Below are positions 8,564 through 57,000 of a stretch of 64,000 bases of DNA, piece after piece. The notes beneath the pieces are model-generated. The model saw only the letters and a list, made by a program, of their open reading frames with translations. It had not been told where the DNA came from and ran no database searches. Where the stretch lies: NCBI GenBank assembly GCA_038087875.1, contig CM075981.1, forward strand, positions 2,480,001 through 2,544,000, in the 5' to 3' direction. The DNA is from Malacoraja senta. Lineage: Eukaryota. Positions within the stretch are counted from its first letter, which is position 1. The number at the start of each line of letters is the position of its first letter. The position numbers and the translations under genes are program-made.

Positions 8564-9091
8564 TCACTCTATTTTCAGCCAGGTCAATACATGACATTTC
8601 CCATGATGAGCAGTGGACCAAATGCAGGTATATGTCCCGGCATCTTTCTCTTTTACCCCCAACAGGAGCAACGAGGCGTCCCGATGCAAGAACACGTTGT
8701 CATTCACGAACTTCCAGTGGTGATAAGATCCCTGATATCCCACTGAAAACCCACTGTGATGCGGGGCAATGGCAACACCGTTTTTTTTCCATGTGACGAG
8801 GCTAGGTTCACTGTAATGCTTGGATATTTTACAGGGCAGCGTAACAGAACCACCCGGAGACACAACGACCACCTGCAGACTAATGATTAAAGGGTGATGA
8901 CCGGCATAACCTGGCTTGTCCATGCATCTTGGAAGCTGTTTATCGTTGACTTGCCGAGTCTTTCGTGCGTTCCACCCAGGCAAGTTTGCTTCCTCTCCCC
9001 ATTCTCTGGAGATCGGACCTGTTCCAGTTCCGGAGACTTGCCACACCATCTCCACAAGGACCATGAATCCTATCCATCTCTGCAGTCCCAT
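8564..9091 (-). CDS. U1: secreted single Ig V-domain preproprotein (175 aa), intact, subfamily A
   Basis: Signal-like MGLQRWIGFMVLVEMVWQVSG, propeptide ending RKTR, then V-set motifs TLPCK / W-KK / RDASLLL / DAGTYTC and a stop with no TM. A splice acceptor tttcacccacag|gaac lies 4 nt before the ATG. Confidence 0.85.
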   Translation of the reverse strand: MGLQRWIGFMVLVEMVWQVSGTGTGPISREWGEEANLPGWNARKTRQVNDKQLPRCMDKPGYAGHHPLIISLQVVVVSPGGSVTLPCKISKHYSEPSLVTWKKNGVAIAPHHSGFSVGYQGSYHHWKFVNDNVFLHRDASLLLLGVKEKDAGTYTCIWSTAHHGKCHVLTWLKIE

Positions 9092-9646
9092 GTTCCTGTG
9101 GGTGAAACAATGGGTCACCTTATTGTAACTCAGTAGGATTTATGATGACATTCCCATTACCTGCCCAGAGTTGGGGAACTAAGAACATCGGTTTAAGGTG
9201 AGGGGAGAAAGATTTAATGGGAAACTGAGGGGCGACTTTTTTACACAAAGGGAGGAGGGTGTTTGGAACGAGCTACCGGAAGAGTTAGTTGAGGCAGGTA
9301 CTATCACAATGATTAAGAAACAGTTAGACAGGTACATGGATAGGACAGGATTAGAGGGGTAAGGGCAAAAAGCAGGTAGGTGGGTCTAGATTTGATGGGA
9401 CAATTTGGTGGGCGTGGGCAAGTTGGGCCGAAGGTCTCGCTGTATGACTCCATCACTTGTCCCAGCCCGGTCATTCCTGCTTCTCCCTGGTCCTAGCAGA
9501 AGGTACAGAAGCTTGAAAGCTCACACCACCAGACTCAGGAACAGCTTCTTCCCCTCTGCTATCAGGCTTCTGAACTGGGGGATCAGTGTACAGAGACAAT
9601 CCCACCCCCATCACTCACAGACACTTGGATCCACAGGGGTGGTTAC

Positions 9647-9800
9647 CAGCTCCGGAGTCTCCACACAGGGTGACGGGGCTGGTCTTGTTCACATCTCCTG
9701 CCATCGCTCGCTCCTTTTATACCTACTCCCGGCTTCTCCTGACCCTCATTGCCTGCGCTCACGTACTTTCAACCAATCACTGTCTCCCACGGAGCATTGG
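9647..9800 (-). promoter_or_regulatory. U1 promoter + non-coding exon 1
   Basis: CCAAT (9796-9800, minus), inverted CCAAT (9773-9777), TATAAAAG (9714-9721), donor gctg|gtaacc at 9647/9646, intron 9646-9096. Confidence 0.75.
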
Positions 9801-10587
9801 CCGGTGTCAGCCGCGACCTCTCCACCCTCTGCCAAACGTGTCCTTGCATCAGCCATTAACGTTTAACAAGAACAACGCCATCCCAGCTGCCAGAGGCCAA
9901 CCAGGCGCCACACACATCCTGCTTGTGTCTCCACCACGTCTGGCCCAGCCACGCCACGTCACCACCGCAACCCTGGCACCTGCACTGTTTTCACAGTTTA
10001 TACTCAGCAGTGCAGGGAGCCAGTGTCACCTCTCCCCGATCAACCCCCTCAACCTGTAACCTACCCCCTGCCCACTGCTGGACAGCAGTTGGTGGAGCAG
10101 CTGTTCCACAAGTCACTGGTCAGGAGAGAGTTGAAGTGGGGGGGTGGTGACCACAGACAGAGAACATCGGTCGGCCCAGGACTGGGTTTGTCATGGCCCC
10201 AGTGAACCCCAGGGAGGAACAACAGTCGACTAATTTCAGAAATCAACTTTATTCAGAATAAAAAAGACACAACACAAACCGTGTGACAATAGACAATAGA
10301 CAATAGGTGCAGCAGCAGGCCATTTGGCCCTTCGAGCCAGCACCGCCATTCAATGTGATCATGGCTGATCATCCCCAATCAGTACCCCGTTCCTGCCTTC
10401 TCCCCATATCCCCTGACTATTTTTTACAGCTCTATCTAGCAGGTCTTTCTTGAAAGCATCCAGAGAACCGGCCTCCACTGCCCTCTGAGGCAGAGAATTC
10501 CAGTGTGAAAAGACTCTTCATCCAATCTCAGTGTGTACATTGAATAATGTCATACTCAGTAGTGTTTGCACTTGTCATTAAAGCAAC

Positions 10588-15297: not shown

Positions 15298-15868
15298 CTA
15301 CTTTCCGTGGGACGGTCTCAGCTGAATCATTGGGAGGTTGTCCTCTAATTTCAGCCAGGCCAATACATGACATTTCCCATGATGAGCAGTGGACCAAGTG
15401 CAGGTATATGTCCCGGCATCTTTCTCTTGTACCCCCCACAGGAGCAACGAGGCGTCCCGACGCATGAACACGTTGTCAATCATGAACTTCCAGCGGGGAA
15501 TAAGTTCCCTGATATCCCACTGAAAACCAACCGTGATATGTGGCAATGGCAACACCGTTTTTTTTTCCATGTGACGAGGATAGGTTTACTGTAATGCTGT
15601 GATATTTTACAGGGCAGCGTAACAGAACCACCCGGAGATACAACGACCACCTGCAGACTAATGATTAAAGGGTGATGACCGGCATAACCTGGCTTGTCCA
15701 TGCATCTTGGAAGCTGTTCATTGTTGACTTGCCGAGGCGCCCGAGCGTTCTCCCCGGGCAAGTTTGCTTCCTCTCCCCATTTTCTGGAGATCAGACCTGT
15801 TCCAGTTCCGGAGACTTGCCACACCATCTCCATAAGGACCATGATCCTATCCATCTCTGCAGTCTCAT
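15298..15868 (-). pseudogene. U2: frameshifted copy of the Ig V preproprotein gene (subfamily A)
   Basis: Relative to U1 there is a 1-nt deletion in the signal peptide (ggattcatg>ggatcatg), 9 vs 8 A in the WKKN run, a further +1 in the C''/D region, and the TGA stop is replaced by GAC. Confidence 0.85.
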
Positions 15869-15913
15869 GTTCCTGTGGGTGAAACAATGGGTTACCTTAT
15901 TGTAACTCAGTAG

Positions 15914-17370: not shown

Positions 17371-17900
17371 AGTAGGATTCATGATGACATTCCCTGAACC
17401 CGCCCAAAGTTGGGGAACCAAGAACATCGGTTTAAGGCGAGGGGGGAAAGATTTAATGGGAAACTGAGGGGTGACTTTTTTACACAAAGTGTGGAGAGTG
17501 TTTGGAACGAGCTGCCGGGAGAGTTAGTTGAGGCAGGCACTATCACAATGATTAAGAAACAGTTAGACAGGTACATTGATAGGACAGGATTAGAGGGGTA
17601 AGGGCTAAAAGCAGGCAGGTGGAACTAGTTTTGATGGGACAAGTTGGTGGGCGTGGGCAAGTTGGGCCGAAGGTCTCGCTGTATGTCTCTAGGACTCCAT
17701 CACTTGTCCCACCCCGGTCATTCCTCCTTCTCCCTGGTCCTGTCTAGCAGAAAGTACAGAAGCTTGAAAGCGCACACCACCAGACTCAGGAACAGCTTCT
17801 TCCCCTCTGCTATCAGTCTTCTGAACTGCGGGAACAGTGAACAGAGACAATCCCACCCCCATCACTCACAGACACTTGAAGGATCCACAGGGGTGGTTAC

Positions 17901-18060
17901 CAGCTCCGGAGTCTCCAAACAGGGTGACGGGGCCGGTCTTGTTCACATCTCCTGCCATCGCTCGCTCCTTTTATACTTACTCCCGGCTTCTCCTGACCCT
18001 CATTGCCTGCGCTCACGTACTTTCAACCAATCACTGCCTCCCACGGAGCATTGGCCGGAG
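17901..18060 (-). promoter_or_regulatory. U2 promoter + non-coding exon 1
   Basis: TATAAAAG at 17968-17975, CCAAT boxes, donor gctg|gtaacc at 17901/17900. Confidence 0.7.
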
Positions 18061-18364
18061 TCAGCCGCGACCTCTCCACCCTCTGCCAAACGTGTCCTTG
18101 CATCAGCCGTTAACGTTTAACAACAACGTCATCCCAGCTGCCAGCGGCCAACCAGGCGCCCCACACATCCTGCTTGTGTCTCCACCACGTCTCGCTCTGG
18201 CCACCCACCCACTCCACTGTGATTGAGAAGACGATGGAACATAGAACATGGAACAGCGCAGCACAGGTAAAGGCCCTTCGGCCCACAATGTCCGTGCTGA
18301 ACATGATGTTGATCATGATGCCGAGAAGTTAAACTAATCACTTCAGCCTGCACGTAATCCACTA

Positions 18365-19693: not shown

Positions 19694-22600
19694 ATGGCAA
19701 AGCTACTTCTTGGAACAGGTAAGAGCCTTTTGCTGTTTAATTCCTTTTGATATTGGAATACTTTTTGAAAGAATTGTTTCTCAAGTTTTATTATAAAGGT
19801 GTCTGAAGAAAGGTCTCAACTCTACCCGACCTTTATCTCCAGAGATGCTGCCTGACCCGCTGCGATACTCCAGCACTTTGTGTCTATCTTTGGTGTAAAT
19901 CAACTTCTGCAGTTCGTAGTTTCTTAATATTTTGTATTTTCCAACGGACCCCCTTCCCCGAAACACCACCCATTCCTTCTCTCTGGAGAAGTTGCCCGAC
20001 CCGCTGAATTACTCCAGCAGTCTGTGAAAATCTTCAGAGACATTTAGAAAATCACGAGGGGAAGAGATATGAAGGATGGTCTCTGCCTTTCTCCAGGGAA
20101 GGGGAGACTAAAACTACAGGGCATTGACTTAAGGTGAAAGGGAAACATTTAAAGGTGAATCCAGGGGCAACTGGGACAAGCTTAGGTGGGGCATCTTGGT
20201 CAGCATGGACAAATTGGGCCAAATGGCCTGTTTCTGCACTGTGTGACTCTATGACTAACCTGTTGCCCAGAGGGTGGTGAGTATATGCTACGATCTGCCA
20301 GAGGAGGTAGATGAGGCAAGTATAATAACAACATTTAAAATACATTTGGACGGGTACATGGATAGGAAAGGTTTAGTTTAGAGATACAGTATGGAAACAA
20401 GGCCCTTCGGCCCACGGAGTCCACGCTGACCTTTGTTCAGCCTTTCAGACTAGTTCAATGTTATCCCACGTATGCATCCACTCCCTGCACACTAGGGGCA
20501 ATTTTACAGAGGGACAATTAACCTTCAATCCCTCACATCTTTGGGATTTGGGAGGAAACCAGAGCTCCTGGAGAAAACCCACTTGGTCACAGGGAGAGGG
20601 AGTTAAGGGTGTGTTATTGTCATATGTACCAGAAACAGAACAATCAAATTTATACTATAATAGTAAGCATAGCAGAGTTGATGTACAAATTCCACACACG
20701 TTCAACACCCATAGTCAAGATCGAACCTGGGTCTCTGGCGCTGTGAGGCAGCAACTCTACCGCTGCTCCACTGTGCCGCCCACAAGATGGATCTTCATAG
20801 TTTCCCAACCACTAATATAACATGTAATACAGCCAAGGTTTCATAAATTCATAATTGATGGGAGCAGAATTAGGCCATTCGGCCCATCTAGTGCACTCTA
20901 GCCACTCAATCATGGCTGATCTATCTTTCCCTCTCAACCCCATTCTCCCCTTCTCCCCGCAATCCCTGACTTATTACGGTATGTCGTAATCCTAACACTC
21001 TGCTCTGTGTTTTCTGTTCCAGCGGTGGTCTTGCTGGCCTGCCTGCAACTGGGTGAGTCTTTGTGCATTTGCAGCCTTGCTTTGCTTTGCTTTGTGTGAG
21101 TGCCACAGAGGCATTGCCCTGACCGCCCTGTCTCTCCCTTGCCCAGGCTCTGCCTACAGGCTGGTGTGTTACTTCACCAACTGGGCGCAGTACAGACCAG
21201 GAGAGGGTAAATACATGCCCCAGAGCGTGGACCCTTGTCTCTGCACGCACATCATCTATGCCTTCGCTGGAATGAAGAGCAATGAGATCGCCATCTACGA
21301 ATGGAACGACCCAAAACTCTACCAGGAGATCAACAGCCTGAAGAACAAGTACAGTCGCTGAATAAATACTAAAGTCTCTGTCCCACTTTCCCGAGTTACA
21401 CACAAATTCTCCCGAGTTTTCCCCTTGATTCAAACTCGGAGAATATCCGTAGCGAGTCTGTAGATATGTTGTCGCGGCTCGTAATGCCAGCCGTAGGTAC
21501 TAGGGGCATCAGGTAAGTCGGGACGTTTTTTCAGCATGTTAAAAAATGTCCACGAGTAAAAAAAAATAGCCCCGAGTACCTACGGCTGGCATCTCCGAGT
21601 TTGAATCAAGGGGAAAACTCGGGAGAATTCGTGAGTAACTCGGGAAAGTGGGACAGGGGCTTAACCTTGTTTCTCAAATGCCGGGCATTGTTGCGATATT
21701 TACATTGTGCAGTTTAGTTCATTGTCACCTGTACTGAGGTACAGTGAAAAGTTGTTGTTGTGTGCTAACCAGTCACTGTATTGGATATTCCCCAAATCCA
21801 TATTCCATAACCCATATTCCACAGTTAATTTAGTTTATTATTGTCACGTGTACCATGGTACCACAAAAAGCTTTTTGTTGCGTGCTAACTAGTCGGCGGA
21901 AAGACTGTACATGATTACAATCAGGCCGTCCACAGTGTACAGACACAGGATAAAGGGTATAATGTTTAGTGCAAGATAAAGTCCAGTGAAGTCTGATTAA
22001 ATATAGTCCGAGGGTCTCCAATGAGGTAGATGGGAGGTCAGGACTTCTCTCTAGTTGGTGAGAGGACGGTTCAGTGGGATAAGCCCACTGTATGGGTTAT
22101 TTAGACTTTAAGTACCAAGGTGATGCCTAACTTCTCAGAGACAGCTTGGTGGAGACAAATGGGTGGAGTGGAACCCTGCTGATTTGGGTCTGATTGGGTT
22201 AAATTTAACCATTAATTCCCCGGTGCTTGCTGTAAGCAAAGAGACATCCAGTGTTTAATGAACATTCCATTTCAAACTCTTCGAAATGGTCGATCTAAGT
22301 GAACAAGTCGTTTGGAAGAGTATGTGGCAAGATACCATATGTTGTACGTACCGAGCGGCGCAGTGACGCAGCGGGTAGACCTACTGCCTCACCGCGCCAG
22401 AGACCTAGGTTCGATCCTTACCTCGGGCACTGTTTGTGTGGAGTTTGCACGTTCTCCCTGTGACGGTGTAGGTTTTCTCTGGATTACCGGTTTTCACCCA
22501 CATTACAAAGGGTTTGTAGGTTAATTGGCCTCTACAAATTGCCCCAAGTACATAGGGAGTGCATGAGAAAGTGGGATAATGTAGAACTGGTGTGAATGGG

Positions 22601-25600
22601 TGATCGATGGTCAGCGGGGTCTTTGACATGACCCTGTTACACATCCATTTGTTGAAGGTTTTCTCATCTCATCCACCTCCCCTGTCTGAAAGGTGACTTG
22701 GTCCAGGGGGATATTCAGGAGAAAGCTATTGGACAGGCCAACAGAATCATCGAGTCATAGATTGAGGAAATATGCCCTTCAGCCCACATAGTGAGACTGG
22801 CCCATTGCTTATGAAGCCTTGTTGCATGAACTTCCACCTCATTTTCTGTGACCCCCTTGAGATCCAGACTGAGGCAAATCCCCTCAACTAAACGTAACAC
22901 CAAAGGGGCAAAAAACCTCAGAAGATCCAGAAGTTCCTGAGAAGTTCTGAAAAATGTTCTGTTGTTCTAAACATAATTCTAAAGCCAAATCTTGTCCATT
23001 TTTTAAGGAATTCAAACCTCAAGACTCTGCTGTCCATTGGAGGCTGGAACTTTGGCACCCAGAAGTAAGATGGAAACTTTTTACGTTAGCATTAGATTAA
23101 AAAAAAGTTATTTTCCAATTGACTGTGATATGGAATGAATATTGAAAGACACAAAGTGCTGGAGTAACTCCTCAGTAACTCAGCCTGAAGAAGGGTCTCG
23201 ACCCGAGTCGTCACCTATCCATGTTCCTCAGAGATGCTGCCTGACCTGCTGAGCTACTCCAGCACTTTGTGTCTTTTCTTTTTGTAAACCAGCACCTGCA
23301 GTTCCATGTGCCTGACGTAAACAGTGGGTGTATTTGGTAATTTTGCCATAAATGCCAAGTGCCGTTTCATGCCTTTTTTGATGATTTTACCAAGATGCCT
23401 TTTTCACGATCGAGTGCCTAAATCAGCCTTTTTTTGCCGTTATGCTAAAAGGTCATGCTATTTTCTCTAGTTGTACCATGATTACAATGACGTTTTCTAT
23501 ATTAACACGTTAATATTAATGTTATTATTAAAGTGTTAACAGTATAAATGACAATAACATTTCCACCACCGGGGCAAAACCGGGGGCACCACCGTCGGTC
23601 GTTCATTCATTCGTGCTGCTGCCCACTGGTTCAGTCTTCTCCAACATCTATTTATTACTTCCAATTTTGCAAACTTCCCACAAGCTATCACTTCCCTTGA
23701 GAAAGGTGGCGAAACATTAGTGAATAACTTGCAGGTTTTCCACAAAGTAACTGACGATATTCGTAAAGTTCCTGGCGATGTAGGTAAAGACATACAAGGA
23801 AAATGTGAGCAAGTGATTTTAGCTAACAACGATCTTGAAGAAATACAAAACATAGCTAAAGTTCTCAAAGGTAATTGTAATGCACAAGATATCAACATGA
23901 ATATAGAGTCCGTAGCTTGTTTCTGGTATGCACCAGTGACCTCAGCTGAGGTAGAAAGAACTGAAGCATATTCTGTCTGACAGACAGCATAGTTTAACAC
24001 CAGATAATTTGAAAAAATGCCTGTAATTATGTGCAACCAGGCAACTTTGGTCATCTAATCTACTATAACATTATATTATCATTTTTAACCATATTTTGGT
24101 GGTGGAAATACATGCCTTTTTATGCCTTTGTCAATAATTGCCTTTTTCGTGCCTTCTTTGTAATTTTTGCCTATTTCAGAGTTTTTTTGTGCCTAAACAT
24201 CCTGGCTCTAGTAATGATATACACAGAGATAAATATCGAGGGGATAATTTTACAGTGAACTGTCTCAGGAGTATTATTAAACAGAGCAGTTTGCAAATTG
24301 TAATTTGAACAATATAGGATATTGCTTGCCAAAAAGTAAAATAACATAATTTTCAGAAAGAATCCTTTCAATAGTGTGTGGCACAGTGGTACAGTTGCTG
24401 CCTAACAGCGCTTACAGCACCAGAGACCCAGGTTCGATTCTGACTACGGGTACTGTCTGTACGGAGTTTGTTCGTTCTCCCTGTGACCTCCTGGGTTTTT
24501 TCCGAGATCTTCAGTTTGCTCCCACACTCCAAAAACTTACAAATTTGTAGGTTAATTGGCTTGTTATAAATGTAAATTGTCCCTTGTGTGTGTAGGATAT
24601 TGTCAGAGTGTGGGGATCGCTGGTCGGTGCAGAGTGGGTGGGCCGAAGGGCCTGTTCTCACGCCGTATCTCTGAACTAAACGTCATTTTCAGAAAGAATA
24701 ATTTCACATGAAACTTCGGATGATAGCAGGAGAAAGGAGTAATATTTTAGCCACGAGCATTTAGCGAACCCTTGGGTGAATCTGTACATGATAGGATATA
24801 ACAGCACAATCACTGGGTCACTGAGTTCAGCGGCTGTTACTACAGTTCCTTGTGTCTCCGGCACATTTCATTTCTAACTCCACTCCCCACATTCACCCCT
24901 CCTGCAGATTCACCGCGATGGTCGGCTCGTCAGGAACTCGGCAAATCTTCATCAAGTCAGTCATCGCCTTCCTGAGAGGGTACAGCTTTGACGGTCTGGA
25001 CATCGACTGGGAATATCCTGGATCTCGAGGAAGTCCTCCCGTTGACAAGCATCTCTACACTGTCCTGGCTCAGGTGCGGTCAAGTACATCTCACTATGGG
25101 TTTCGTTAAAATAAATGGGCCAAACGGAGGCCAAACCCACCCTTATCTCCACAGATGCTGCCTGACCCGCTGAGTTACTCCAGTACTCTGTGAAACGTCA
25201 CCTATCCACGTTCTCCAGAGATGCTGCCTGACTGGCTGAGTTACTCCAGCACTTTGTGGTACTAGTGTAGATGGGACATATTGGTCGGTGTGGGCAGGTT
25301 GGGCCAAAGGGTTTGTTTCCACGCTGCATGACTTGCAAATTTATCCAATAAATGTAACCTTATTGTCAAGATCACCAAGGTCAGATTTTCACAGATTACA
25401 CAAAGGAATTTAAGAATTCAGAAATTAAGAATTTAATAAAATTTGAACCAAGCACCATTTTGAGTGGGGATTAATAGGCTTCTTCCCCACTCTTGGGCGA
25501 CACGGTGGTGCAGCGGTAAAGTTGCTGCCCCACAGCCTAAACTTGAAATTGACACAAAGTGTTGGAGTAACTCAGCGGGTCAAGCAGCATCTCTGGGGAA

Positions 25601-28600
25601 AAAGAATAGGTGATGTTTCGGGTCGGGGCCCTTCCTAAGACTAGACTTGATCTCTTGCTAAAGGAGCCCTCGATCTCTCTGACCCACAGGAGCTGATGGC
25701 TGCCTTTGAGGCCGAGGGGAAAAGCACAGGAAAGCCACGACTCCTGCTCTCGGCTGCCGTTGCTGGTGGGAAGAGCAACATCGATACTGGCTACGAGGTT
25801 CCTCAGCTCGGCAAGTGAGTGTCCTTCCACACGCAAAGAAACCCAACTTTTCCTGTGGGCTTTCATCTTGGGAGTTTAACGAATTTGACGTCGTATTTGA
25901 ACTAGTTTTTCATCGCTCCACAATTTCATTGGTGGGAGCTTCCAGCCTGATGATTAAGATCCATCCACAACCCTAATGCATTCAATGCCTTTATCGGTCG
26001 GGGCATTGAGTGTGAGAGTCAGGAAGCCAACTTGCAGCTCTGTAGGTCTTTGGCCAGGAGGCATTTAGAGCATTGCGTGCAGGTCTGGCCATCTCCATTA
26101 CAGAAAGCATGTGGAGGCTTTGGAGACGGTACAGAGGAGATTTACCAGAGCGCTGCCTGGATTAGAGGGGATTAGCTACAGGGAGAGGTTGGACAAACTT
26201 GCATTGTTTCCTCTGGAATGTCAGAGGTTGAGGAGTGACTTGATAAAAGTTTATAAAATCACTAGAGGCATAGATAGGGTAGACAGTCAGAACCTGCTGG
26301 GGTGGTGGTTGAAACAGATACGTTAATGGCATTTAAAAGACCTTTAGATAGGCCCATGATCATGCCGGGCATGGAGGGATGTTGGTGATGTGCAGGTAGA
26401 TAAGTGATGGCCTTGGCATCATGTTCAAGTTTAAAGGAGATATGCAGGGTTTTTTTTACAGAGATAGTAGTGGGTGCCTGGAACGTGCTGCCAGGGATGG
26501 TGGTGGAGGCAGATACGAAAGTGGTGTTTAAGAGGCTTGTAGATATACAAGGAATGGAGGGATATGGATCACGTGTAGACAGAGGAGATGAGTTTATCTT
26601 GCCGTCATGTTTGGCATGCACATTGTGGGCAGAAGGGCCTGTTCCTGTGTTGTACTGTTCTGCATTCTGATGTTAATTTGGTGCATGGAGTATCAGGGTG
26701 ACCCCGGTCTCCGCTCTTGCAGGGTAGTAGACTTCTTCAATGTGATGACATACGATTTCTATGGTCCCTGGAGCCACGTTACTGGAGAGAACAGCCCCCT
26801 CTATCCCCTGCCTAATGACAAGGATTACACCAACATCCACTTCAATGTGGTAAGTGCTCAAGAAAACTTAATCCTGCTCAACTTCTTCAATTCCTCTCTC
26901 CGAATTAATAAATCCTTTTTGCCAAGTCCATATAACTGTTCCATACACCATGGAGAGCAGACTGTGGGGTTGCATCACAACTAGGTTTGGGAACAGCTCT
27001 GAGCCCAAGACCACAAGAAATTGCAGAGAGTTGTGGATGGAGCAGTCCATCCCACAGACCGCACTCCCCACCATTGACTCCATCTACAATTCACGCTGCC
27101 TCAGAAAAGCAGCCAACATAATCAAAGACTTGTCCCACCCCGGTCATTCCTCCTTCTCCCTGGTCCTGTCTAGCAGAAAGTACAGAAGCTTGAAAGCGCG
27201 CACCACCAGACTCAGTAACAGCTCCTTCCCCTCTGCTATCAGGCTTCTATAAGCTTGGGTACTGTCTGATGCACCTCTACCCCATTGCGGACATTGGACT
27301 TTGTCTCTAGAACTGATGCGCTACGATGCTGAGAACTATATTCTGTACTCTGTATCTTCCCCTTTGCTCCGCCTATTGTACCCGAGTTTGATTTCATTGT
27401 ATTTATGTACGGTATTATCTGATCTGTTTGGAAGCTTTTCACTGTGTCTCGGTACACGTGACAATAATAAACCTAAAGTTAAACATGAGCCTAATGTCCT
27501 TTGATGCCAACTGTGTCCCTGCAGGAATACGCCATGAACTACTGGAAGAGCAAGGGGGCTCCAGTGGATAAGTTGAATGTGGGCTTCCCCACCTACGGAC
27601 ACACATTCAGGCTGACCTCGTCCAGCACGGCCGTGGGTGCACCAGCAGGAGGCGCTGGACCAGCTGGCAAATACACCCGCCAAGCCGGCTTCCTGGCCTA
27701 CTATGAGGTACTGTACCTACCGACCAATCCAACCGCGTGGCCCTTTACTCAATGTTATCTTCCAATCCAATACTGAATAACCACACACAACATACATGGA
27801 CACAAGGTGCTGGAGCCTGAGGAAGGATCTCCACCCGAAACATCACCCACCCACATTCTCCGTTCTCGTTCTCTCCTCTTTCAATCTTTTTCTTTCATGT
27901 TTCTCCCTTCTCTTCACATGTCTCTCTCCTCTTTCCTCCTCTCTCTGCACATCTCTACATCTTTCTGCTCCTCTCCTCTCAGTATCTGACACTATTTTGT
28001 CTCCTGTTCCCCTCCAGCCTTTGTCACTATCTCCACCCACCAATCTTGTTGAGGTGTCAAATGGTTACCCCTCAGGTTTAATAGACAATAGGTGCAGGAG
28101 TAGGCCATTCGGCCCTTCGAACCAGTACCGTTCCTATTAAATCTTTCTCCCTCACCTTATGTCTTCTGGTTCTCGATTCCCCGACTCTGGGCAAGAGACA
28201 CTTTGCGTTGACCTGATCGGTTCCTCTCATGATTTTTTTCCACCTCAACAAGATTGGTCCCTAACATCTCCGTCTCTGGACAGATCTGCGGGTTCCTGAA
28301 CGGTGCCACCAGCGAATGGAACGCCCCACAGGACACCCCGTACGCCTTCAAGAATGGAATATGGATCGGCTATGACAACATCAAGAGCTTTGGAGACAAG
28401 GTACATCTGACCATAGAAGTTCCACCCTTTCCACGTGAACCATCGTGGTCTCTTTTATCTCAATATCTGTTGCAGAGTTTCCAACAGTGAGCTCCAGAAT
28501 TATGCTTCAAAATCTTCAGAATCTTTTGTCGTTACATTCTGCATAAAATTTCCAGCTCACCATAAATTCATGGTGTTCGGGTGTCAGGGGTAATGGGGAG

Positions 28601-36479: not shown

Positions 36480-37050
36480 ACAATAGACAATAGACAATAG
36501 GTGCAGGAGTAGGCCATTTGGCCCTTCGAGCCAGCATCGCCATTCAATATGATCATGGCTGCTCATCCCCAATCAGTACCCCGTTCCTGCCTTCTCCCCA
36601 TATCCCCTGACTCCGCTATTTTTAAGAACTCTATCTAGCTCTCTCTTGAAAGCATCCAGAGAACCGGCCTCCACCACCCTCTGACGCAGAGAATTCCACA
36701 GACTCACCAGTCTCTGTGAGAAAAAGTGTTTCCTCATCTCCGTTCTAAATTGCTTACTCCTTATTCTTAAACTGTGGCCCCTGGTTCTGGACTCCCCCAA
36801 CATCGGGAACATGTTTCCTGCCTCTAGCGTGTCCAAACCCTTAACAATCTTATATGTTTCAATGAGATCCTCCCATCCTTCTAAACTCCAGAGTGTACAA
36901 GCCCAGCCGCTCCATTCTCTCAGCATATGACAGTCCCGCCATCCCGGGAATTAACCTTGTAAACCTACGCTGCACTCCCTCAATAGCAAGAATGTCCTTC
37001 CACAAATTAGGGGACCAAAACTGTACACAATACTCCAGGTGTGGTCTCAG
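36480..37050 (-). mobile_element. CR1 3' fragment (mirror at ~57175-57750, +)
   Basis: CR1 C-terminal peptide and (ctattgt)n tail. Confidence 0.9.
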
Positions 37051-37222
37051 GTCAGGGGCAAGGTCAGGGGCAAGTCAGCACAACCACCCCATAATGTCTG
37101 TCATTGTAAACGTGACACACTTAGGTCAACACCAAATTTAGGAACAGCATTTTATTTTGTAGTCACTGAAATCATCATGCTCCTGTCCCTTGGAAGGGCT
37201 TGTGTTGAATCAGTGGGAGGTT

Positions 37223-37787
37223 TCACTGCACTGTCAGCTTGGTGTTCAGTTTACACGGCTCGTTATTAACCAGCCAAGCGCACAAATATTTCCCAGCATC
37301 TTCCTCTTCCAGCCCCGTCAGGACCAACGAGGCGTCCCGTGTCTCATCCACTTTTGTTTTCATGAATTTCCAGCGTCCGGGTGACCCTGGATATTGCGCA
37401 CCGTTCCTGTCAGTAAACACGGCGATCGTATCTTTTCCTTTCGTCCACAGCACCACAAATTTATCGGCTCCACCGTCTTCTTTGGGCATTTTGCAGGATA
37501 GCTGAGCAGAACTCGAAGGGCCGAATGGCCTACTCCTGCACCTATTTTCTATGTTTCTAACCACCCTTACTGGCCGTCACCTCCGTCCATCTCATCTTCT
37601 CTGGAGCGAGGTTAACACCGCATTGTGGAGTTGGATCTTCATTGACTTGCCGAGACGCCCGTGCGTTCCACCCGGGCAAGTTTGCTTCCTCTCCCCATTC
37701 TCTGGAGATCAGACCTGTTCCAGTTCCGGAGACTTGCCACACCATCTCCACAAGGACCATGAATCCTATCCATCTCTGCAGTCCCAT
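37223..37787 (-). pseudogene. U3: Ig V preproprotein gene (subfamily B) disrupted by a 49-nt CR1-tail insertion
   Basis: The prepro (RASR) and V domain (SAQLSCK...WTKG...RDASLVL...DAGKYLC) are intact on either side of the insertion at 37510-37558, which creates a TAG stop. Confidence 0.88.
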
Positions 37788-38366
37788 GTTCCTGTGGGTG
37801 AAACAATGGGTCACCTTATTGCAACTCAGTAGGATTCATGATGACATTCCCTGAACCCGCCCAGAGTTGGGGAATCAAGAACCAGAGGACATCAGTTTAA
37901 GGTGAGGGGGGGAAAGATTTAATGGGAAACTGAGGGGTGACTTTTTTACACAAAGGGTGGAGGTTGTTTGGAACGAGCTGCCGGGAGAGGTAGTTGAGGC
38001 AGGTACTATCACAATGATTAAGAAACAGTTAGACAGGTACATTGATAGGACAAGATTAGAGGGGTAAGGGCCAAAAGCAGGCAGGTGGAACTAGTTTTGA
38101 TGGGACAAGTTGGTGGGCGAGGGCAAGTTGGGCCAAAGGTTTCGCTGTATGACTCTATGACTCCATCACTTGTCCCACCCCGGTCATTCCTCCTTCTCCC
38201 TGGTCCTGTCTAGCAGAAGGTACAGAAGCTTGAAAGCTCACACCACCAGACTCAGGAACAGCTTCTTCCCCTCTGCTATCAGGCTTCTGAACTGGGGGAA
38301 CAGTGAACAGAGACAATCCCACCCCCATCACTCACAGACACTTGAAGGATCCACAGGGGTGGTTAC

Positions 38367-38525
38367 CAGCTCCGGAGTCTCAACACAGGGTGACGGGGCC
38401 GGTCTTGTTCACATCTCCTGCCATCGCTCGCTCCTTTTATACCTACTCCCGGCTTCTCCTGACCCTCATTGCCTGCGCTCACGTACTTTCAACCAATCAC
38501 TGCCTCCCACGGAGCGTTGGCCGGA
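38367..38525 (-). promoter_or_regulatory. U3 promoter + non-coding exon 1
   Basis: TATAAAAG at 38434-38441; donor at 38367/38366. Confidence 0.7.
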
Positions 38526-38799
38526 GTCAGCCACGACCTCTCCACCCTCTGCCAAACGTGTCCTTGCATCAGCCGTTAACGTTTAACAAGAACAACGCCA
38601 TCCCAGCTGCCAGCGGCCAACCAGGCGGCCACACATAGCACTGGAAGGCAGCAACACTCCCGCTGCGCCACTGTGCCGCCCTTGCATTGGCCTCTTGCAC
38701 AAGTTATAAAAGTATGAGGTCCAGATAGGGTAGACAGTCAGAACCAATTTTCCATGGTGAAAATGCCAAGGACGTCAGGGTGAAAAAGGAAAAAAATTA

Positions 38800-40865: not shown

Positions 40866-41381
40866 TCACTTCACTGCAAGCTTGATATTTAGTCTACATT
40901 CCCCTTGGCTAGTGAACCAAGCGCAGGAATATATCCCAATATCACTCTCTTGTACACCCATGATTACCAACGAGGCATCCCGTGTCCCAGCCACATCTGT
41001 TTTCATGAACTCCCAGCGGCTGACACCCCCTGGATAGGTTGCACCTTTCCCTACAGTAAACACGCCCAGTGTCCCCTTCCCTTTAGTCCAGCTGACCACA
41101 AAATGCGTGGGTCCAGCCTTCCCTGTGGGTACTTTACAGGGTAGCGTAGCAGAACCACCCTTGCGTGCCGTCATCTCCGTCCATTTCGTCTTTTTCACAG
41201 TTGGATTAACACCGCATTCTGGAGTTTCTTGTTTGTTGACTTGTCGAGGCTCCCGTGCGTTCCACCCGGGCAAGTTTGCTTCCTCTCCCCATTCCCTGGA
41301 GATCGGACCTGTTCCAGTTCCGGAGACTTGCCACACCATCTCCACAAGGACCATGAATCCTATCCATCTCTGCAGTCCCAT
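40866..41381 (-). CDS. U4: secreted single Ig V-domain preproprotein (171 aa), intact, subfamily B
   Basis: Same signal and propeptide (REPR), V motifs ATLPCK / VSWTK / RDASLVI / DIGIYSC, then a stop. Acceptor cccacag|gaac precedes the ATG. Confidence 0.85.
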   Translation of the reverse strand: MGLQRWIGFMVLVEMVWQVSGTGTGPISREWGEEANLPGWNAREPRQVNKQETPECGVNPTVKKTKWTEMTARKGGSATLPCKVPTGKAGPTHFVVSWTKGKGTLGVFTVGKGATYPGGVSRWEFMKTDVAGTRDASLVIMGVQESDIGIYSCAWFTSQGECRLNIKLAVK

Positions 41382-42933: not shown

Positions 42934-43505
42934 ATGATGACATTCTCTGAAGCTGCTGCCACCACACTGGGCAATGTCGCTGTGCAGCTTCTTCAGTTCC
43001 CGCCTGGTTTATTTTAAGTTGCTTTGACCTGTCATGGACCAACAACATTGAAGTGGCAGCCAAGGAGGCACACCGATGCATCTACTTCCCCGGAGATCGA
43101 GGAAATATTGCAAGTCTCCAATGTCTCTTAGAATCTTCTACAGATGCACCATGGAGTGCAGACTGTGGGGTTGCATCACAACTAGGTTTGGGAACAGCTC
43201 TGAGCCCAAGACCACAAGAAATTGCAGAGAGTTGTGGATGGAGCCCAGTCCATCACACAGAACACACTCCCCACCAGTGACTCCATCTACAACCCAAAAA
43301 ATCAAAGACTTGTCCCACCCCGGTCATTCCTCCTTCTCCCTGGTCCTGTCTAGCAGAAGGTACAGAAGCTTGAAAGCGCGCACCACCAGACTCAGGAACA
43401 GCTTCTTCCCCTCTGCTATCAGGCTTCTGAACTGCGGGAACAGTGAACAGAGACAATCCCACCCCATCACTCACAGACACTTGAAGGATCCACAGGGGTG
43501 GTTAC

Positions 43506-43665
43506 CAGCTCCAGAGTCTCCACACAGGGTGTCGGGGCCGGTCTTGTTCATATCTCCTGCCATCGCTCGCTCCTTTTATACCTACTCCCGGCTTCTCCTG
43601 ACCCTCATTGCCTGCGCTCACGTACTTTCAACCAATCACTGCCTCCCACGGAGCGTTGGCCGGAG
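43506..43665 (-). promoter_or_regulatory. U4 promoter + non-coding exon 1
   Basis: TATAAAAG at 43573-43580; donor gctg|gtaacc at 43506/43505. Confidence 0.7.
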
Positions 43666-44164
43666 TCAGCCGCGACCTCTCCACCCTCTGCCAAACGTGT
43701 CCTTGCATCAGCCGTTGACGTTTAACAAGAACGACGCCATCCCAGCTGCCAGCGGCCAACCAGGCGCCCCACACATCCTGCTTGTGTCTCCACCACGTCT
43801 GGCCCAGCCACGCCCTGGCACCTGCGCTGGTTTCACAGTTTATACTCAATATGAGCCGGCGGTGCGGTGGGATTGGTCGTAGCTGAATCCGGCCTATGCC
43901 CCGTGGGAGGCAGTGATTGGATCAATACTTCCTTCCCAACAACCATCAGGCTCTTGAACACGACACGACTCTGAGCTCAACGATGAACGTCTATAGACTG
44001 TCTTTGGTTGTACAAAGGATGTTGGCTTTACACACTATTGTATTGGGCTCTCTCATTTACTGAATCCTTTTGCTTTTTACATATTATATCCGTGTGGTTT
44101 ATTGTGTAAAAGGCTCCTCAACACAGGACACTTTCCAGTCATGGTTTTCCTTCCTTTTCCCCAG

Positions 44165-44298: not shown

Positions 44299-46539
44299 TT
44301 CAATTATTATTTGCATCCCAAGTTTAACAGGTCTGAGCAGCAAAGTTGTGTCATGGAGTTGCCTTTAGCTGAGTTGAGTCGAGTTGACTTGAGTTGACTT
44401 GAGTTTACTTTAGATTTGTTTAGAGCGATCGCCCGTACACAAGTTCTAACCTACACACAAGGGACAATTTACTGAAGCCAATTAACCTACAAACCTGCAC
44501 ATCTTCGAAATCTGTCAGGAAACTGTAGCACCCGGAGGAAACCCACACGGTCATAGGGACAACTTACAACCTCCGTACAGACAGTACCCACAGTCAGCAT
44601 TGAACCCGGGTCTCTGGCGCTGTAAGGCAGCAACTCTACTGCTGCATCACTGAGCCTCCCTTACATTGGCCTCTTGCACTGTTGGGGCTGCTGATTAGAG
44701 TCCAGTTTTGATCCTCATTGGGAGTGTGCAGAAACATAGAAACATAGAAAATTGGTGCAGGAGTAAGCCATTCGGCCCTTCGAGCCAGCACCGCCATTCA
44801 ATATGATCATCGCTGAACATCCTAAATCAGTACCCCGTTCCTGCTTTCTCCCCATATCCCTTGATTCCGTTAGCACTAAGAGCTAAATCTAACTCTCTCT
44901 TGAGAACATCCAGTGAATTGGCCTCCACTACCTTCTGTGGCAGAGAATTCCACAGATTCACAACTCTCTGGGTGAAAAGGTTTTATTCATCTCAGTCCTA
45001 AATGGCCGACCCCTTATTCTTAAACTGTGACCCCTTGGTTCCCCCAACATCGGGAACATTTTTCCTGCATCTATCTAGTCTGTCCAATCCTTTAAGAATT
45101 TTATATGTTTTTATAAGTTCCAGTCTCATCCTAAATTCCAGTGAATACAAGCAGTCGAGCCATTCTTTCATCATATGTCAGTCCCGCCATCCTGGGAATT
45201 AACCTGGTGAACCTACGTTGCACTCCTTCAATAGCAAGAATGCCCTTCCTCAAAATGACAGTGGAGGGCTGCCACTACAGAGACATCCAATAGACCTGAT
45301 AGAATGATATAGAATTATGAGAGGCGTAGATAGCGGAATTAACCAGAAGCAATTTCCCAAAAGCTTTTCCCAAAGGAGAGGGTTCAGAAGCGGTTTCCCA
45401 AAATGATGCCGGGATTGGAGGTTGTTAGTTATAAAGACAGGTTGGATAGTCTCGGATTGTATTCTCTAGAACTTCAGATGTTGAGGGGAGACCTGACAGA
45501 AGGTTATAAAATTATGAGAGCCAGATAGGGGAGACAGTCAGAACCAATTTCGCAGGGTGGAAATGCCAAAGACTAGAGGGCATCGCTTTAGGGTAGGATG
45601 CTTTCAAGAGAGAGTTAGATAGAGCTCTTAAAGATAGCGGAGTCAAGGGATATGGGGAGAAGGCAGGAATGGGGTACCGATTGTGGATGATCAGCCATGA
45701 TCACAGTGAATGGCGGTGCTGGCTCGAAGGGCCGAATGGGCAACTACTGCGCATATTATTTATTGTCTATTGTCTATTGTCTATTGAGATAGGAAAAATG
45801 TTAAGATGGGCGGGTCACAGAGGGTATTGGGTGCCTGGAACCCGCTGCTGTGGGTGGTGGTGGCAGATACAATAGTTAAGAGTCTTTATCTAAAAAATCT
45901 CATGAATATGCAGGGAATGGAGGATTATGGATCACAGAGGAGATTAGCTTAACATGGCATCATGTTCAGCACGGACCTTGTGGGCCGAAGGGCCTGTTCC
46001 TGTGCTGTACTGTTCCATGTTCTATGTTACATAGTCTTCTCAATCACATCTTGAGAAGAACATTTTCCAGAGGTGCCCTGGTACCACCAGTGGGACATTC
46101 ATTGTACCTGCTGCAGCCAATGAGTGTGTTGTGTATACAGCCAGAGGAGAAGAGGAGATTTATGTGGAGTTTCATTTTGTAATCATTATTTATTTAATGT
46201 CATAGTGTAATAGAGTCATAGTGATACAGCGTGGAAACAGGCCCTTCGGCCCAACTTGCCCACACTGGCCAACATGTCCCAGCTACACTAGTCCCACCTG
46301 TTGGCCATATCCCTCCAAATCTGACCTATACCTGTTCCTGCCTAACTGTTTCTTAAACGTTGGGATAGTTTCTGCCTCAACTGCGATGGTTGACCAGAGC
46401 CAGACGTGGTGGAGACACAAGCAGGATGTGTGGGGCGCCTGGTTGGCCGCTGGCAGCTGGGATGACGTTGTTCTTGTTAAACGTTAACAGCTGATGCAAG
46501 GACACGTTTGGCAGAGGGTGGAGAGGTCGTGGCTGACTC

Positions 46540-46696
46540 CGGCCATTGCTCCGTGGGAGGCAGTGATTGGTTGAAAGTACATGAGCGCAGCCAATGAGGG
46601 TCAGGAGAAGCCGGGAGTAGGTATAAAAGGAGCGAGCGATGGCAGGAGATGTGAACAAGACCGGCCCCGTCACCCTGTGTGGAGACTCCGGAGCTG
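46540..46696 (+). promoter_or_regulatory. U5 promoter + non-coding exon 1
   Basis: gattgg, ccaat (46591), TATAAAAG at 46622-46629, donor gctg|gtaacc at 46696/46697, intron 46697-47271. Confidence 0.75.
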
Positions 46697-47275
46697 GTAA
46701 CCACCCCTGTGGATCCTTCAAGTGTCTGTGAGTGATGGGGGTGGGATTGTCTCTGTTCACTGTTCCCGCAGTTCAGAAGCCTGATAGCAGAGGGGAAGAA
46801 GCTGTTCCTGAGTCTGGTGGTGTGAGCTTTCAAGCTTCTGTACCTTCTGCCAGACAGGACCAGGGAGAAGGAGGAATGACCGGGGTGGGACAAGTGATGG
46901 AGTCATAGAGACATACAGCGAGACCTTTGGCCCAACTTGCCCGCGCCCACCAACTTGTCCCATCAAATCTAGTTCCACCTGCCTGCTTTTGGCTCTTACC
47001 CCTCTAATCCTGTCCTATCAATGTACCTGTCTAACTGTTTCTTAATCATTGTGATAGTACCTGCCTCAACTACCACTTCCGGCAGCTCGTTCCAAACAAC
47101 CTCCACCCTTTGTGTAAAAAAGTCACCCCTCAGTTTCCAATTAAATCTTTCCTCCCCTCACCTTAAACCGATGTCCTCTGATTCTCGATTCCCCAACTCT
47201 GGGCGGGTTCAGGGAATGTCATCATGAATCCTACTGAGTTGCAATAAGGTGACCCATTGTTTCAACCACAGGAAC

Positions 47276-47806
47276 ATGGGATTGCAGAGATGGATAGAAT
47301 TCATGGTCCTTGTGGAGATGGTGTGGCAAGTCTCCGGAACGAGAACAGGTCCGATCTCCAGAAAATGGGGAGAGGAAGCAAACTTGCACGGGTGGAACGC
47401 ACGGGCACCTCGGCAAGTCAACGATAAACAGCTTCCAAGATGCATGCACAAGCCAGGTTCTGACAGTGATCACCTTCCATCGATTTGCGAGCATTTGTTC
47501 TTTGCATCTCCGGGTGAATCTTTTACGCTGCCCTGTAAAATATCCGCGGATTACAAACAACCCTCGTTACTTCAGTGGAAAAAAAACGGTGTTCCCATTG
47601 CCAATTTTGATGATAAAACGTTTCAGAAATATATGGGATCTGATGTCAGCTGGAAATTCGTGGATCCAGAAGCCCTTTGGGGGAAACGGGACGGCTCGTT
47701 GCTCCTGACAGGCATAAAAGAGAAAGATGAGGGGATATATTCATGTGTTTGGTTCATTGATTCTCATGCGGTATGTGAAGAATTTGCCCGGCTGACAATC
47801 AAGTGA
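47276..47806 (+). CDS. U5: secreted single Ig V-domain preproprotein (176 aa), intact, subfamily A
   Basis: Signal plus propeptide (RAPR), FTLPCK / QWKK / RDGSLLL / DEGIYSC, then a stop. Acceptor caaccacag|gaac precedes the ATG. Confidence 0.85.
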   Translation: MGLQRWIEFMVLVEMVWQVSGTRTGPISRKWGEEANLHGWNARAPRQVNDKQLPRCMHKPGSDSDHLPSICEHLFFASPGESFTLPCKISADYKQPSLLQWKKNGVPIANFDDKTFQKYMGSDVSWKFVDPEALWGKRDGSLLLTGIKEKDEGIYSCVWFIDSHAVCEEFARLTIK

Positions 47807-54452: not shown

Positions 54453-55914
54453 GATGGTCTCAGACCCGACCCACAAGTGATGGTCTCAGACCCGACCCAT
54501 CAAAAACTGCACCTATCAACGAAATGCCGGTTCCTGCTGACGTCGTGAGCCTACAAAGGTTCCTTGGAATGGTCAACTACCGGGGGAAATCTATTCCCAA
54601 CCTCAGCGACATATCTGCCCCCCTGCGGGAACTGACACACAAAGACGTTGCATGGTCCTGGTATCCGCAGCACCAAAGAGCTTTTGATGCTCTCAAATTG
54701 CAGCTGGCTCGTGCACCTACTCTCGCCTATTTTGCTTTGGAGTTACCAGTAACGCTCACCTGCGATGCGTCCCAGTATGGACTTGGCGCAGCATGCCTGC
54801 AGTCCACTCCCGATGGCGACTGCAAGCCCGTTTCTTACGCCTCTCGCACAGTAACTGACACTGAACAACGTTACGCTCACATCGAAAAAGAATTGCTCGC
54901 AGTGGTTTTCGCCTGGAAAGTCTGTGACTAGAGAAACTGACCACCAGCCGCTGGTCACTATTTTGAACAAACCCATCCACGCTGCCTCAGCACGACTACA
55001 GCGAATGATGATGCAACTGCAGCGATTTGATTTCAACATGGTCTATAAGAAATGCAAGGACATGCACATAGCTGATACGCTATCAAGAGCCCCACGCAAA
55101 ACCAACAAACAACAACTCTCTGAACAGGACCAGTTCTCAGTAAGGAAGGTATCGTATGTTCCTACTGATTGCCTGAGCAGCCTAGTAGAAAACACGGCTG
55201 CTGATGAGACTTTACAATTGCTGTCTGCAGTCATCCGGCGTGGCTGGCCGGATAAACAACACAACACCCCCGCTCGCAACCCGCCCATACTTCCTGGTTC
55301 ACGTGCAGGCAGTGGAGATTAGTTTAAGTTGGCATCATGTTCAGCATGGACCTTGTGGGCCGAAGGGCCTGTTCCTGTGCTGTACTGTTCCATGTTCTAT
55401 GTTACATAGTCTTCTCAATCACATCTTGAGAAGAACATTTTCCAGAGGTGCCCTGGTACCACCAGTGTGACATTCATTGTACCTGCTGCAGCCAATGAGT
55501 GTGTTGTGTATACAGCCAGAGGAGAAGAGGAGATTTATGTGGAGTTTCATTTTGTAATCATTATTTATTTAATGTCATAGTGTAATAGAGTCATAGTGAT
55601 ACAGCGTGGAAACAGGCCCTTCAGCCCAACTTGCCCACACTGGCCAACATGTCCCAGCTACACTAATCCCACCTGTTGGTCCATATCCCTCCAAATCTGA
55701 CCTATACCTGTTCCTGTCTAACTGTTTCTTAAACGTTGGGATAGTTTCTGCCTCAACTGCGATGGTTGACCAGAGCCAGACGTGGTGGAGACACAAGCAG
55801 GATGTGTGGGGCGCCTGGTTGGCCGCTGGCAGCTGGGATGGCGTTGTTCTTGTTAAACGTTAACGGCTGATGCAAGGACACGTTTGGCAGAGGGTGGAGA
55901 GGTCGCGGCTGACT

Positions 55915-56072
55915 CCGGCCAATGCTCCGTGGGAGGCAGTGATTGGTTGAAAGTACGGGAGCGCAGGCAATGAGGGTCAGGAGAAGCCGGGAGTAGGTAT
56001 AAAAGGAGCAAGCGATGGCAGGAGATGTGAACAAGACCGGCCCCGTCACCCTGTGTGGAGACTCCGGAGCTG
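55915..56072 (+). promoter_or_regulatory. U6 promoter + non-coding exon 1
   Basis: ggccaatg, gattgg, TATAAAAG at 55998-56005, donor at 56072/56073, intron 56073-56431. Confidence 0.72.
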
Positions 56073-56435
56073 GTAACCACCCCCTGTGGATCCTTCAAGT
56101 GTCTGTGAGTGATGGGGGTGGGATTGTCTCTGTTCACTGTTCCCCCAGTTCAGAAGCCTGATAGCAGAGGGGAAGAAGCTGTTCCTGAGTCTGGTGGTGT
56201 GAGCTTTCAAGCTTCTGTACCTTCTGCTAGACAGGACCAGGGAGAAGGAGGAATGACCGGGGTGGGACAAGTGATGGAGTCCTAGAGTCATACAGCGAGA
56301 CCTTCGGCCCAACTTGCCCGCGCCCACCAAATGTCCTCTGGTTCTCGATTCCCCAACTCTGGGCGGGTTCAGGGAATGTCATCATGAATCCTACTGAGTT
56401 GCAATAAGGTGACCCATTGTTTCACCCACAGGAAC

Positions 56436-57000
56436 ATGGGACTGCAGAGATGGATAGGATTCATGGTCCTTGTGGAGATGGTGTGGCAAGTCTCCGGAAC
56501 TGGAACAGGTCCGATCTCCAGAGAATGGGGAGAGGAAGCAAACTTGCCCGGGTGGAACGCACGGGCGCCTCGGCAAGTCAATGAAGATCCAACTCCACAA
56601 TGCGGTGTTAACCTCGCTCCAGAGAAGATGAGATGGACGGAGGTGACGGCCAGTAAGGGTGGTTAGAAACATAGAAAATAGGTGCAGGAGTAGGCCATTC
56701 GGCCCTTCGAGTTCTGCTCAGCTATCCTGCAAAATGCCCAAAGAAGACGGTGGAGCCGATAAATTTGTGGTGCTGTGGATGAAAGGAAAAGATACGATGG
56801 CCGTGTTTACTGACAGGAACGGTGCGCAATATCCAGGGTCACCCGGACGCTGGAAGTTCATGAAAACAAACGTGGATGAGACACGGGACGCCTCGTTGGT
56901 CCTGACGGGGCTGGAAGAGGAAGATGCTGGGAAATATTCCTGCGCTTGGCTGGTTAATAACGTGCCGTGTAAACTGAACACCAAGCTGACAGTGCAGTGA
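56436..57000 (+). pseudogene. U6: Ig V preproprotein gene (subfamily B) with the same 49-nt CR1-tail insertion as U3
   Basis: The insertion at 56665-56713 creates a TAG; the remaining frame is intact to the TGA at 57000. Confidence 0.88.

Follow-up and report, generated by a model that had tools for sequence, protein, structure and literature searches.

Nectin/PVR-type V domains are widely used as virus receptors and as checkpoint ligands of natural killer (NK) and T cells. The V-region-containing chitin-binding proteins (VCBPs) of amphioxus and Ciona are secreted, diversified V-type immunoglobulin (Ig) proteins of multigene families, active in innate or mucosal defence. Cartilaginous fish are the oldest living lineage with immunity based on Ig and T-cell receptors (TCR), and each diversified V-domain family found in them bears on the recruitment of V domains for recognition. 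Six paralogous V-domain genes, U1 to U6, are described here from a stretch of 64,000 nucleotides of the skate Malacoraja senta (GenBank assembly GCA_038087875.1, contig CM075981.1, positions 2,480,001 to 2,544,000, forward strand), referred to below as the window. Judged from sequence, they probably represent a batoid-restricted tandem family of two-exon genes, the products of which are secreted, prepro-type, soluble binders with a single IgV domain of the nectin/PVR type.

Domain 1 (D1) of the nectins, PVR (CD155, necl-5), CD226, CD96, TIGIT and PVRIG resembles the family in the framework motifs GxSVTLPC, W, RDASL and DxGxYxC. The ectodomain of nectins and necls is composed of three Ig domains in the order V-C-C; in the family a stop follows right after V. 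Nectins and necls possess a transmembrane (TM) segment and a cytoplasmic tail with a PDZ-binding (afadin) or band 4.1 motif (PMC7286890). The open reading frame (ORF) of the family, in contrast, ends at the V domain. It has one domain, without C2 domains, TM segment or cytoplasmic tail, and its predicted coding sequence (CDS) occupies one exon. TIGIT and PVRIG have a single IgV domain too, but with a TM segment and a signalling tail (immunoreceptor tyrosine-based inhibitory motif, ITIM, and Ig tail tyrosine motif, ITT), both of which are absent here. An N-terminal segment of ~50 amino acids (aa) and a Cys pair are added in the family, which is tandemly amplified and fast-evolving. In primates, soluble CD155 beta and gamma are secreted nectin-family ectodomains that lack the TM segment (PMC9263721). 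They set a precedent for action as a soluble decoy or ligand. They are produced, however, by alternative splicing of a three-domain gene, whereas the genes described here are dedicated V-only genes.

V domain and relatives of the family

Six paralogs had been placed by a preliminary description of this DNA at the coordinates and on the strands listed in Table 1, and translation of all six intervals matches that account. U1, U4 and U5 are intact, with uninterrupted ATG-to-stop ORFs of 175, 171 and 176 codons, respectively. Subfamilies A (U1/U2/U5) and B (U3/U4/U6) are each recovered with 100% SH-aLRT support. A leader and one V domain followed by a stop are indicated concordantly by the ORFs, the Pfam calls and the alignment. 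Pfam assigns Ig/V-set to the proteins of all three intact genes. The B-strand Cys, C-strand Trp, RDASL and DxGxYxC are invariant or nearly so in an alignment of 12 family sequences. The stop is located directly after the G strand. The genes are real and form a tandem family with divergent V regions, in agreement with the earlier designation as a diversified family.

Searches of PDB sequences with the V regions of U1 and U4 (phmmer) gave nectin-2 and PVR/CD155 D1 as the top matches (E 5e-9, 3e-6). The family profile matched PVR D1 first (2.7e-13), then JAML, CD226 D1 and nectin-2. With the family alignment, AlphaFold2 (AF2) predicts the V domain with confidence (predicted local distance difference test, pLDDT, 85-92 for residues 70-175). 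The first ranks of a Foldseek search against PDB are held by nectin-1 D1, nectin-2 D1-D2, CD226/necl-5, nectin-3 and a TIGIT/PVR complex. Identity to the top nectin-1/-2/-3 D1 matches is 21-33%. Antibody V domains rank below nectin/PVR D1. No match was found in NCBIfam. A viral fold library returned only generic viral IgV proteins (11-27% identity), with no sign of viral origin. According to the sequence searches and the predicted fold, the V domain is a nectin/PVR/CD226-type IgV. The genes had been called an unrecognised family; this holds for the full-length protein, which has no characterised relative, but not for the V domain, which is recognisable as this type.

An assignment to antigen-receptor-type V genes, either germline-joined V regions or Ig/TCR-like V segments, is highly improbable. 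The V-set fold and the multigene cluster are shared with such genes, and cartilaginous fish do have germline-joined Ig genes. Ig/TCR V segments are characterized by recombination signal sequences (RSS), a leader split by a phase-1 intron and an open end before the G strand. In the family, no RSS heptamer or nonamer is present within 200 nt of the V end, leader and V region are contiguous in one exon without a leader intron, and the G strand is germline-encoded without a J-type FGxG/WGxG motif. No C exon was found by pattern scan. The nearest structures are nectin/PVR D1, as given above, with antibody V domains lower.

Word-index searches of 5.8 billion proteins, made with a single protein and with a profile, yielded seven relatives, six from Leucoraja erinacea and one from Rhinoraja longicauda, all annotated as 'uncharacterized protein'. 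One further full-length match with a single domain, Narcine bancroftii XP_069798310 (NCBI name 'nectin-1-like'), came from an exhaustive HMMER profile search of 1.84 billion representatives; the word-index search was repeated with the Narcine protein as query. Among the matches listed, full-length relatives occur only in these three batoids. They are 175-221 aa in length and all end after the V domain. All other matches listed are multi-Ig proteins scoring through summed domains. Gene models for the family are already predicted in public annotation. Look-ups of the exact U1 and U4 sequences in public assemblies gave no record. Keyword searches of the literature gave no description of such a family and no paper naming the loci by gene ID. 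The family is unstudied. A known adhesion/immune-receptor domain has here given rise to a new soluble branch, so that the protein is not of an unknown kind.

The gene of Narcine shares with the skate genes the two-exon layout with a single coding exon and the acceptor ...cacccacag|. An AFA| signal-peptidase site, the linker Cys and the G-strand Cys are present in its protein. In Rhinoraja, at least five copies are located in 20 kb, one of them broken. Window DNA is ~90% identical to the Leucoraja locus. Two near-identical LOC129708942-type copies lie 7 kb apart in Leucoraja (stretch L005, 3105-4299 and 10001-11197), with V regions ~0.25% different, indicating a very recent tandem duplication.

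Layout of the gene and its predicted product

DNA coding for the N-terminal extension of the skate homologs was found by tBLASTn 0.5-2 kb upstream of all six U copies. The aligned upstream regions contain a promoter with two CCAAT boxes, one inverted CCAAT and TATAAAAG, followed by a short exon with a GTGAGT donor. The acceptor of exon 2, cacccacag|GAAC, leaves 4 nt between the exon start and the ATG of MGLQRW. Public models use an upstream ATG. In TATAAAAG the first T of the TATA box is only 17 nt upstream of that ATG, which therefore is probably 5' of the transcription start. The upstream ATG was rejected as the start of translation: besides its closeness to the TATA box, the exon-1 ORF is frameshifted in 4/4 Rhinoraja exon-1 copies of stretch L003 and broken in U3 and U6, and the N-terminal extension of the public models, 30-31 aa in Leucoraja, is 27 aa and unrelated in Narcine. 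The DNA of this extension is most likely 5' untranslated region (UTR) or untranscribed, and translation is taken to start at MGLQRW. With exon 1 as 5' UTR, the entire CDS (signal, linker, V domain) is therefore contained in one exon. Such a layout is unusual among Ig superfamily genes. The exon1-exon2 junction proposed earlier falls, with the sole intron, in the 5' UTR and not between leader and V. A retained leader intron in place of the 'propeptide' was also rejected. The donor ACAG|GTCCGA is of phase 1 and the acceptor ctgcag|GTG of phase 0, hence out of phase; the stretch holds an invariant Cys and is coding in the public models of three species.

A 1.46-kb repeat family is represented in intron 1 of both U2 (15913-17371) and U4 (41464-42937), with 92.9% identity between the two. 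Relative to the ATG, both insertions took place at nearly the same point (~50 nt upstream, to within ~10 bp) but in opposite orientations, which suggests independent insertions at a hot spot. For two Rhinoraja copies (L003 1279-1794 and 9968-10558, one of them annotated as LOC144605155), the nearest exon-1/promoter module (235-325 and 8919-9009) is located ~1 kb upstream on the opposite strand. Such an orientation suggests a local inversion or divergently arranged promoters.

A second invariant Cys pair, absent from the preliminary description, is formed by C56 in the linker and C166 at the G-strand start, ten residues after the F-strand Cys (U1 numbering). All four Cys are invariant in the 12 sequences. 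An intramolecular C56-C166 disulfide would fasten the N-terminal segment at the FG-loop base. The extra C-C' disulfide of CD300/pIgR/TREM/MDIR is lacking, as stated earlier: no family member has a Cys between the C-strand Trp and the D strand, and the extra pair is of a linker-to-G-strand type. A P-R|Q-V motif is conserved at the module boundary from skates to Narcine, in skates within R-x-x-R. The propeptide of ~25 aa proposed earlier is plausible, because the conserved PRQV site coincides exactly with the end of the conserved module; the cleavage itself is a prediction, and the site is not universal (see below).

The PVR-like IgV group (PVR, nectins, CD226, TIGIT, CD96) is characterized by an AX6G 'lock' in C'-C'' and a T(F/Y)P 'key' in the FG loop (PMC9263721). 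U1, U3/U6, LOC129708941, LOC129708945 and the Narcine gene retain the lock, which is missing from U4, U5 and other members. Only Narcine has the key (TYP). It is lost in all skate copies, which have instead a variable loop closed by the new Cys.

The following mechanism is proposed. The TATA/CCAAT promoter would drive the short non-coding exon 1, and the second exon would encode the whole product, translated from MGLQRW. The product would consist of a cleavable signal peptide (MGLQRW...VSG), an N-terminal stretch of ~50 aa and one IgV domain, and would be soluble, ~150 aa in size, without a membrane anchor. The first ~25 residues after the signal, up to P-R|Q-V, would be removed as a propeptide. 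The linker Cys would be bonded to the Cys at the G-strand start, pinning the N-terminal segment beside the FG loop. The protein may act as a diversified soluble binder or decoy through the face used by nectin-family V domains for ligand contact. As the skate copies are without the key motif, the targets need not be nectins.

Divergence of the copies and alternative readings

From the promoter as far as codon 49 (RQVN), all paralogs, whether of subfamily A or B, are 92-98% identical to one another; past that point, the two subfamilies can hardly be aligned. Synonymous divergence (dS) is 0.03-0.17 in the 5' coding part vs 0.3-0.75 in the V part. The promoter/exon-1 tree groups the copies by species, with the minimum possible number of label changes, reached in 0/200 shuffles. 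Its support is 98% for the Leucoraja and Rhinoraja groups and only 45% for the six window copies. The V-region tree groups the copies by ortholog across species (95-100% support). Species-wide substitutions are in line with these groupings: position 21 is Ala in all Leucoraja copies, and among Rhinoraja copies A28 is found in 4/4 of L003 and G48 in all. Between species the 5' module is 93-96% identical, flanking DNA ~90%. The homogeneity of the module is probably the result of gene conversion plus constraint; the conserved block also spans promoter, 5' UTR and intron, which points to homogenisation at the DNA level. In the proposed mechanism, the 5' module (promoter through codon 49) would be homogenised in this way, and the V part would diverge fast with orthology kept.

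Conotoxins, cathelicidins and defensins are similar in evolutionary mode only, with a near-invariant signal/pro part, a divergent mature part and a break at a basic, processing-like site. They are of unrelated fold, and the block conserved in the present family extends to non-coding DNA (promoter, 5' UTR, intron). The idea of 'toxin-like' effectors, raised in the preliminary description, receives no support from the analysis: nothing points to toxicity or antimicrobial activity.

Several points weigh against a family of secreted, processed single-V proteins. Cleavage of the signal peptide and of the propeptide is a prediction, and so is the extra disulfide. The N-terminus is disordered in the AF2 model (pLDDT <50 for residues 1-51 and 54-66 near the linker Cys). 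The R-x-x-R / P-R|Q site is missing in Leucoraja LOC129708937. A 25-nt block spanning the stop (GTGAAACCTCCCACTGATTCAGCA; 8540-8566, 40842-40868, 47804-47830 and equivalents) is more conserved across the subfamilies than the V domain, and may serve as an element of the 3' UTR or as a weak splice donor. Poly(A) signals are located at uneven distances past the stop, from +67 to +1401 nt. Pairwise dN/dS near 1 and the broken state of 3/6 copies also fit relaxed constraint.

The 3' end might be read differently, with the V exon non-terminal and a donor over the stop (xA|GTGAAAC) spliced to downstream exons of a TIGIT/PVRIG-type or multi-domain nectin-like receptor; the 'secreted' ORF would then be an unspliced reading. 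The conservation at and just past the stop in both subfamilies, beyond the level of the V domain, is in accordance with this, as are canonical poly(A) signals far past the stop in U1, U2 and U5. The reading is nevertheless improbable. The donor would be weak and of phase 2, which is atypical for Ig-domain exons, and U2 is without it. Homology between the subfamilies ends ~50 nt past the stop. Public gene models in three species all end at the V-domain stop. The C-terminus of Narcine differs, with ATTAAA 9 nt past the stop. No further Ig exon was found in the 64-kb window by a crude Cys-Trp-DxGxYxC pattern scan. Apart from the leader, no hydrophobic segment common to the copies was detected by hydrophobicity analysis; a lone borderline stretch in the A strand of U1 (KD19 1.62) is not present in U4 and U5. 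The absence of TM segments, RSS and constant domains, claimed earlier, agrees with these scans of the copies and of the window. On account of the stop-spanning GTGAAAC block and the irregular poly(A) distances, an isoform spliced downstream retains a small share of the probability.

There is likewise a slim chance that the array is mostly decaying DNA, in which a nectin-derived gene was amplified with repeats and drifts neutrally, the intact ORFs being young copies not yet hit. Repeats are dense around the copies and have also inserted into introns. Half of them are broken, as is one Rhinoraja copy, and pairwise dN/dS of the V domain is about 1 (0.5-1.3, Nei-Gojobori). Neutral drift is opposed by the four Cys, Trp, RDASL and DxGxYxC, invariant in 12 sequences including Narcine (29% identity), by a gene structure kept between skates and electric ray, and by the higher between-species identity of the promoter module relative to its flanks. 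In the closest ortholog pair, U1 / LOC129708937, dN/dS of strands is below that of loops (0.46 vs 1.17); other pairs are noisy, and the comparison is no formal test for positive selection. A structural core invariant out to Narcine, together with this dN/dS pattern, fits a purified framework with fast-changing surface loops.

For the secreted single-V family, a wider role is suggested tentatively. The family may be a batoid invention, in which a nectin/PVR-type V domain was captured into a single-exon prepro gene and amplified as a host-defence or decoy system, the V domain and its FG loop, clamped by the new disulfide, diversifying in an arms race. The counterpart could be viruses using nectin-type receptors or, given the neighbouring chitinase genes, gut/mucosal microbes. 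If true, the family would be a cartilaginous-fish counterpart of the VCBP idea, with germline-diversified secreted V domains as innate effectors. In the family, a nectin/PVR-type V domain has become free-standing, secreted (as predicted), tandemly amplified and fast-evolving, with regulatory/prepro and binding modules evolving separately. If pathogens or host nectin-family receptors are bound, the products would amount to naturally occurring single-domain binders, soluble and with an FG loop clamped by a disulfide. If they are inert or lineage-trivial, the genes are still a clear example of modular concerted and divergent evolution within a single exon.

Duplications, chitinase and mobile elements of the locus

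U2 is a tandem duplicate of U1 (block 12981-15913 vs 6213-9136, 94.8% identical) and carries at least three 1-bp frameshifts. The common 49-bp insert of U3 and U6 resembles a common skate repeat and shifts the frame after codon 76, and the ORF pieces of both genes were read separately. A mini-intron was rejected as an explanation, since no in-frame GT..AG pair excises the insert; U3 and U6 are pseudogenes. The preliminary description treated them as independent copies. This has to be corrected, as both are situated in the arms of one inverted duplication (29946-38636 vs 64000-55802, 96-99.7% identical) and are consequently duplicates of a gene already broken.

Table 1. Coordinates of the V-domain genes, their 5' modules and other features of the window
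Feature	Position	Strand	Description
U1 CDS, intact, 175 aa	8564..9091	-	signal peptide, N-terminal extension, one IgV, stop
U1 5' module	9546..9853	-	CCAAT boxes, TATAAAAG, putative non-coding exon 1, GTGAGT donor at ~9618, start of intron 1
U2 pseudogene	15298..15868	-	1-bp indels in leader and V region; family stop gone
U2 5' module	17797..18107	-	parted from exon 2 by 1.46-kb repeat in intron 1 (15913-17371)
Chitinase gene	20996..29861	+	GH18 exons in profile order, CBM14 in last exon, stop 29859-29861
Inverted duplication, left arm	29946..38636	.	holds gap and U3
CA-rich minisatellite and assembly gap	30612..32111	.	18/38-bp repeats 30612-31120, N run 31133-32111; intergenic
U3 pseudogene, subfamily B	37223..37787	-	frame shifted by 49-bp repeat-derived insert, ~37513-37561
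U3 5' module	38263..38573	-	stop inside exon-1 upstream ORF
U4 CDS, intact, 171 aa, subfamily B	40866..41381	-	
U4 5' module	43403..43712	-	intron 1 of ~2 kb through repeat insertion (41464-42937)
U5 5' module	46489..46800	+	TATA at 46622, Gnomon-type upstream ATG at 46639, exon-1 donor at 46728
U5 CDS, intact, 176 aa, subfamily A	47276..47806	+	fifth Cys present
Inverted duplication, right arm	55802..64000	.	holds U6 and second gap (62335-62804)
U6 5' module	55866..56177	+	1-bp insertion in exon 1
U6 pseudogene	56436..57000	+	49-bp insert as in U3, ~56662-56712

U3 and U6 could also be one locus assembled twice, as an inverted haplotig or collapsed repeat, which would leave five members instead of six. 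An identical disabling insert is carried by both, the N gaps of the two arms fall at the same CA-rich minisatellite, and one arm is cut off by the window end. Such an artefact is unlikely. The arms differ by 3-4% and by indels over 8.7 kb, far above usual allelic divergence, which argues for two real loci. Moreover, two chitinase genes, each with flanking V genes, are present in Leucoraja, as fits a real duplication. The right arm reaches the window end, so that the duplication probably continues, and a second, inverted chitinase copy is probably located just beyond 64000, as in Leucoraja. The gap at 31133-32111 begins 1.27 kb past the chitinase stop and is at a distance of 5.1 kb from U3. Since no family or chitinase ORF is near it, continuity or frame across the gap is irrelevant to the finding.

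The chitinase gene appears complete, with an intact DGLDIDWE motif, a Gly/Ser-rich linker and a C-terminal CBM14. Its exons were mapped except for one or two small ones between 25.1 and 26.6 kb. It is tail-to-tail with U3, as its ortholog is with LOC129708945 in Leucoraja, where two chitinase genes have V genes beside them in this arrangement. No such linkage was evident within 10 kb in either Rhinoraja or Narcine. The proximity of a chitin-related gene gives the family a suggestive likeness to VCBPs. VCBPs have two tandem V domains fused to a C-terminal chitin-binding domain in one polypeptide; the family has one V domain and no chitin-binding domain in the ORF. The CBM14 is part of the neighbouring chitinase, a separate gene on the other strand, and not of the V genes.

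Between U5 and U6, a long interspersed nuclear element (LINE) occupies 49000-52900 (-), with an AP-endonuclease domain at 51453-52166 and reverse-transcriptase (RT) ORFs. Its upstream ORF carries a GDSL-esterase domain (52292-52900). A pol fragment of a long terminal repeat (LTR) retroelement, with RVT_1 and RNase H in broken frames, is found at 53292-55319 (+). Between U1 and U2, at 11026-12877 (-), an ORF of the tyrosine-recombinase ('phage integrase') family stands beside RT-like ORFs, suggesting an element of DIRS/Crypton type.

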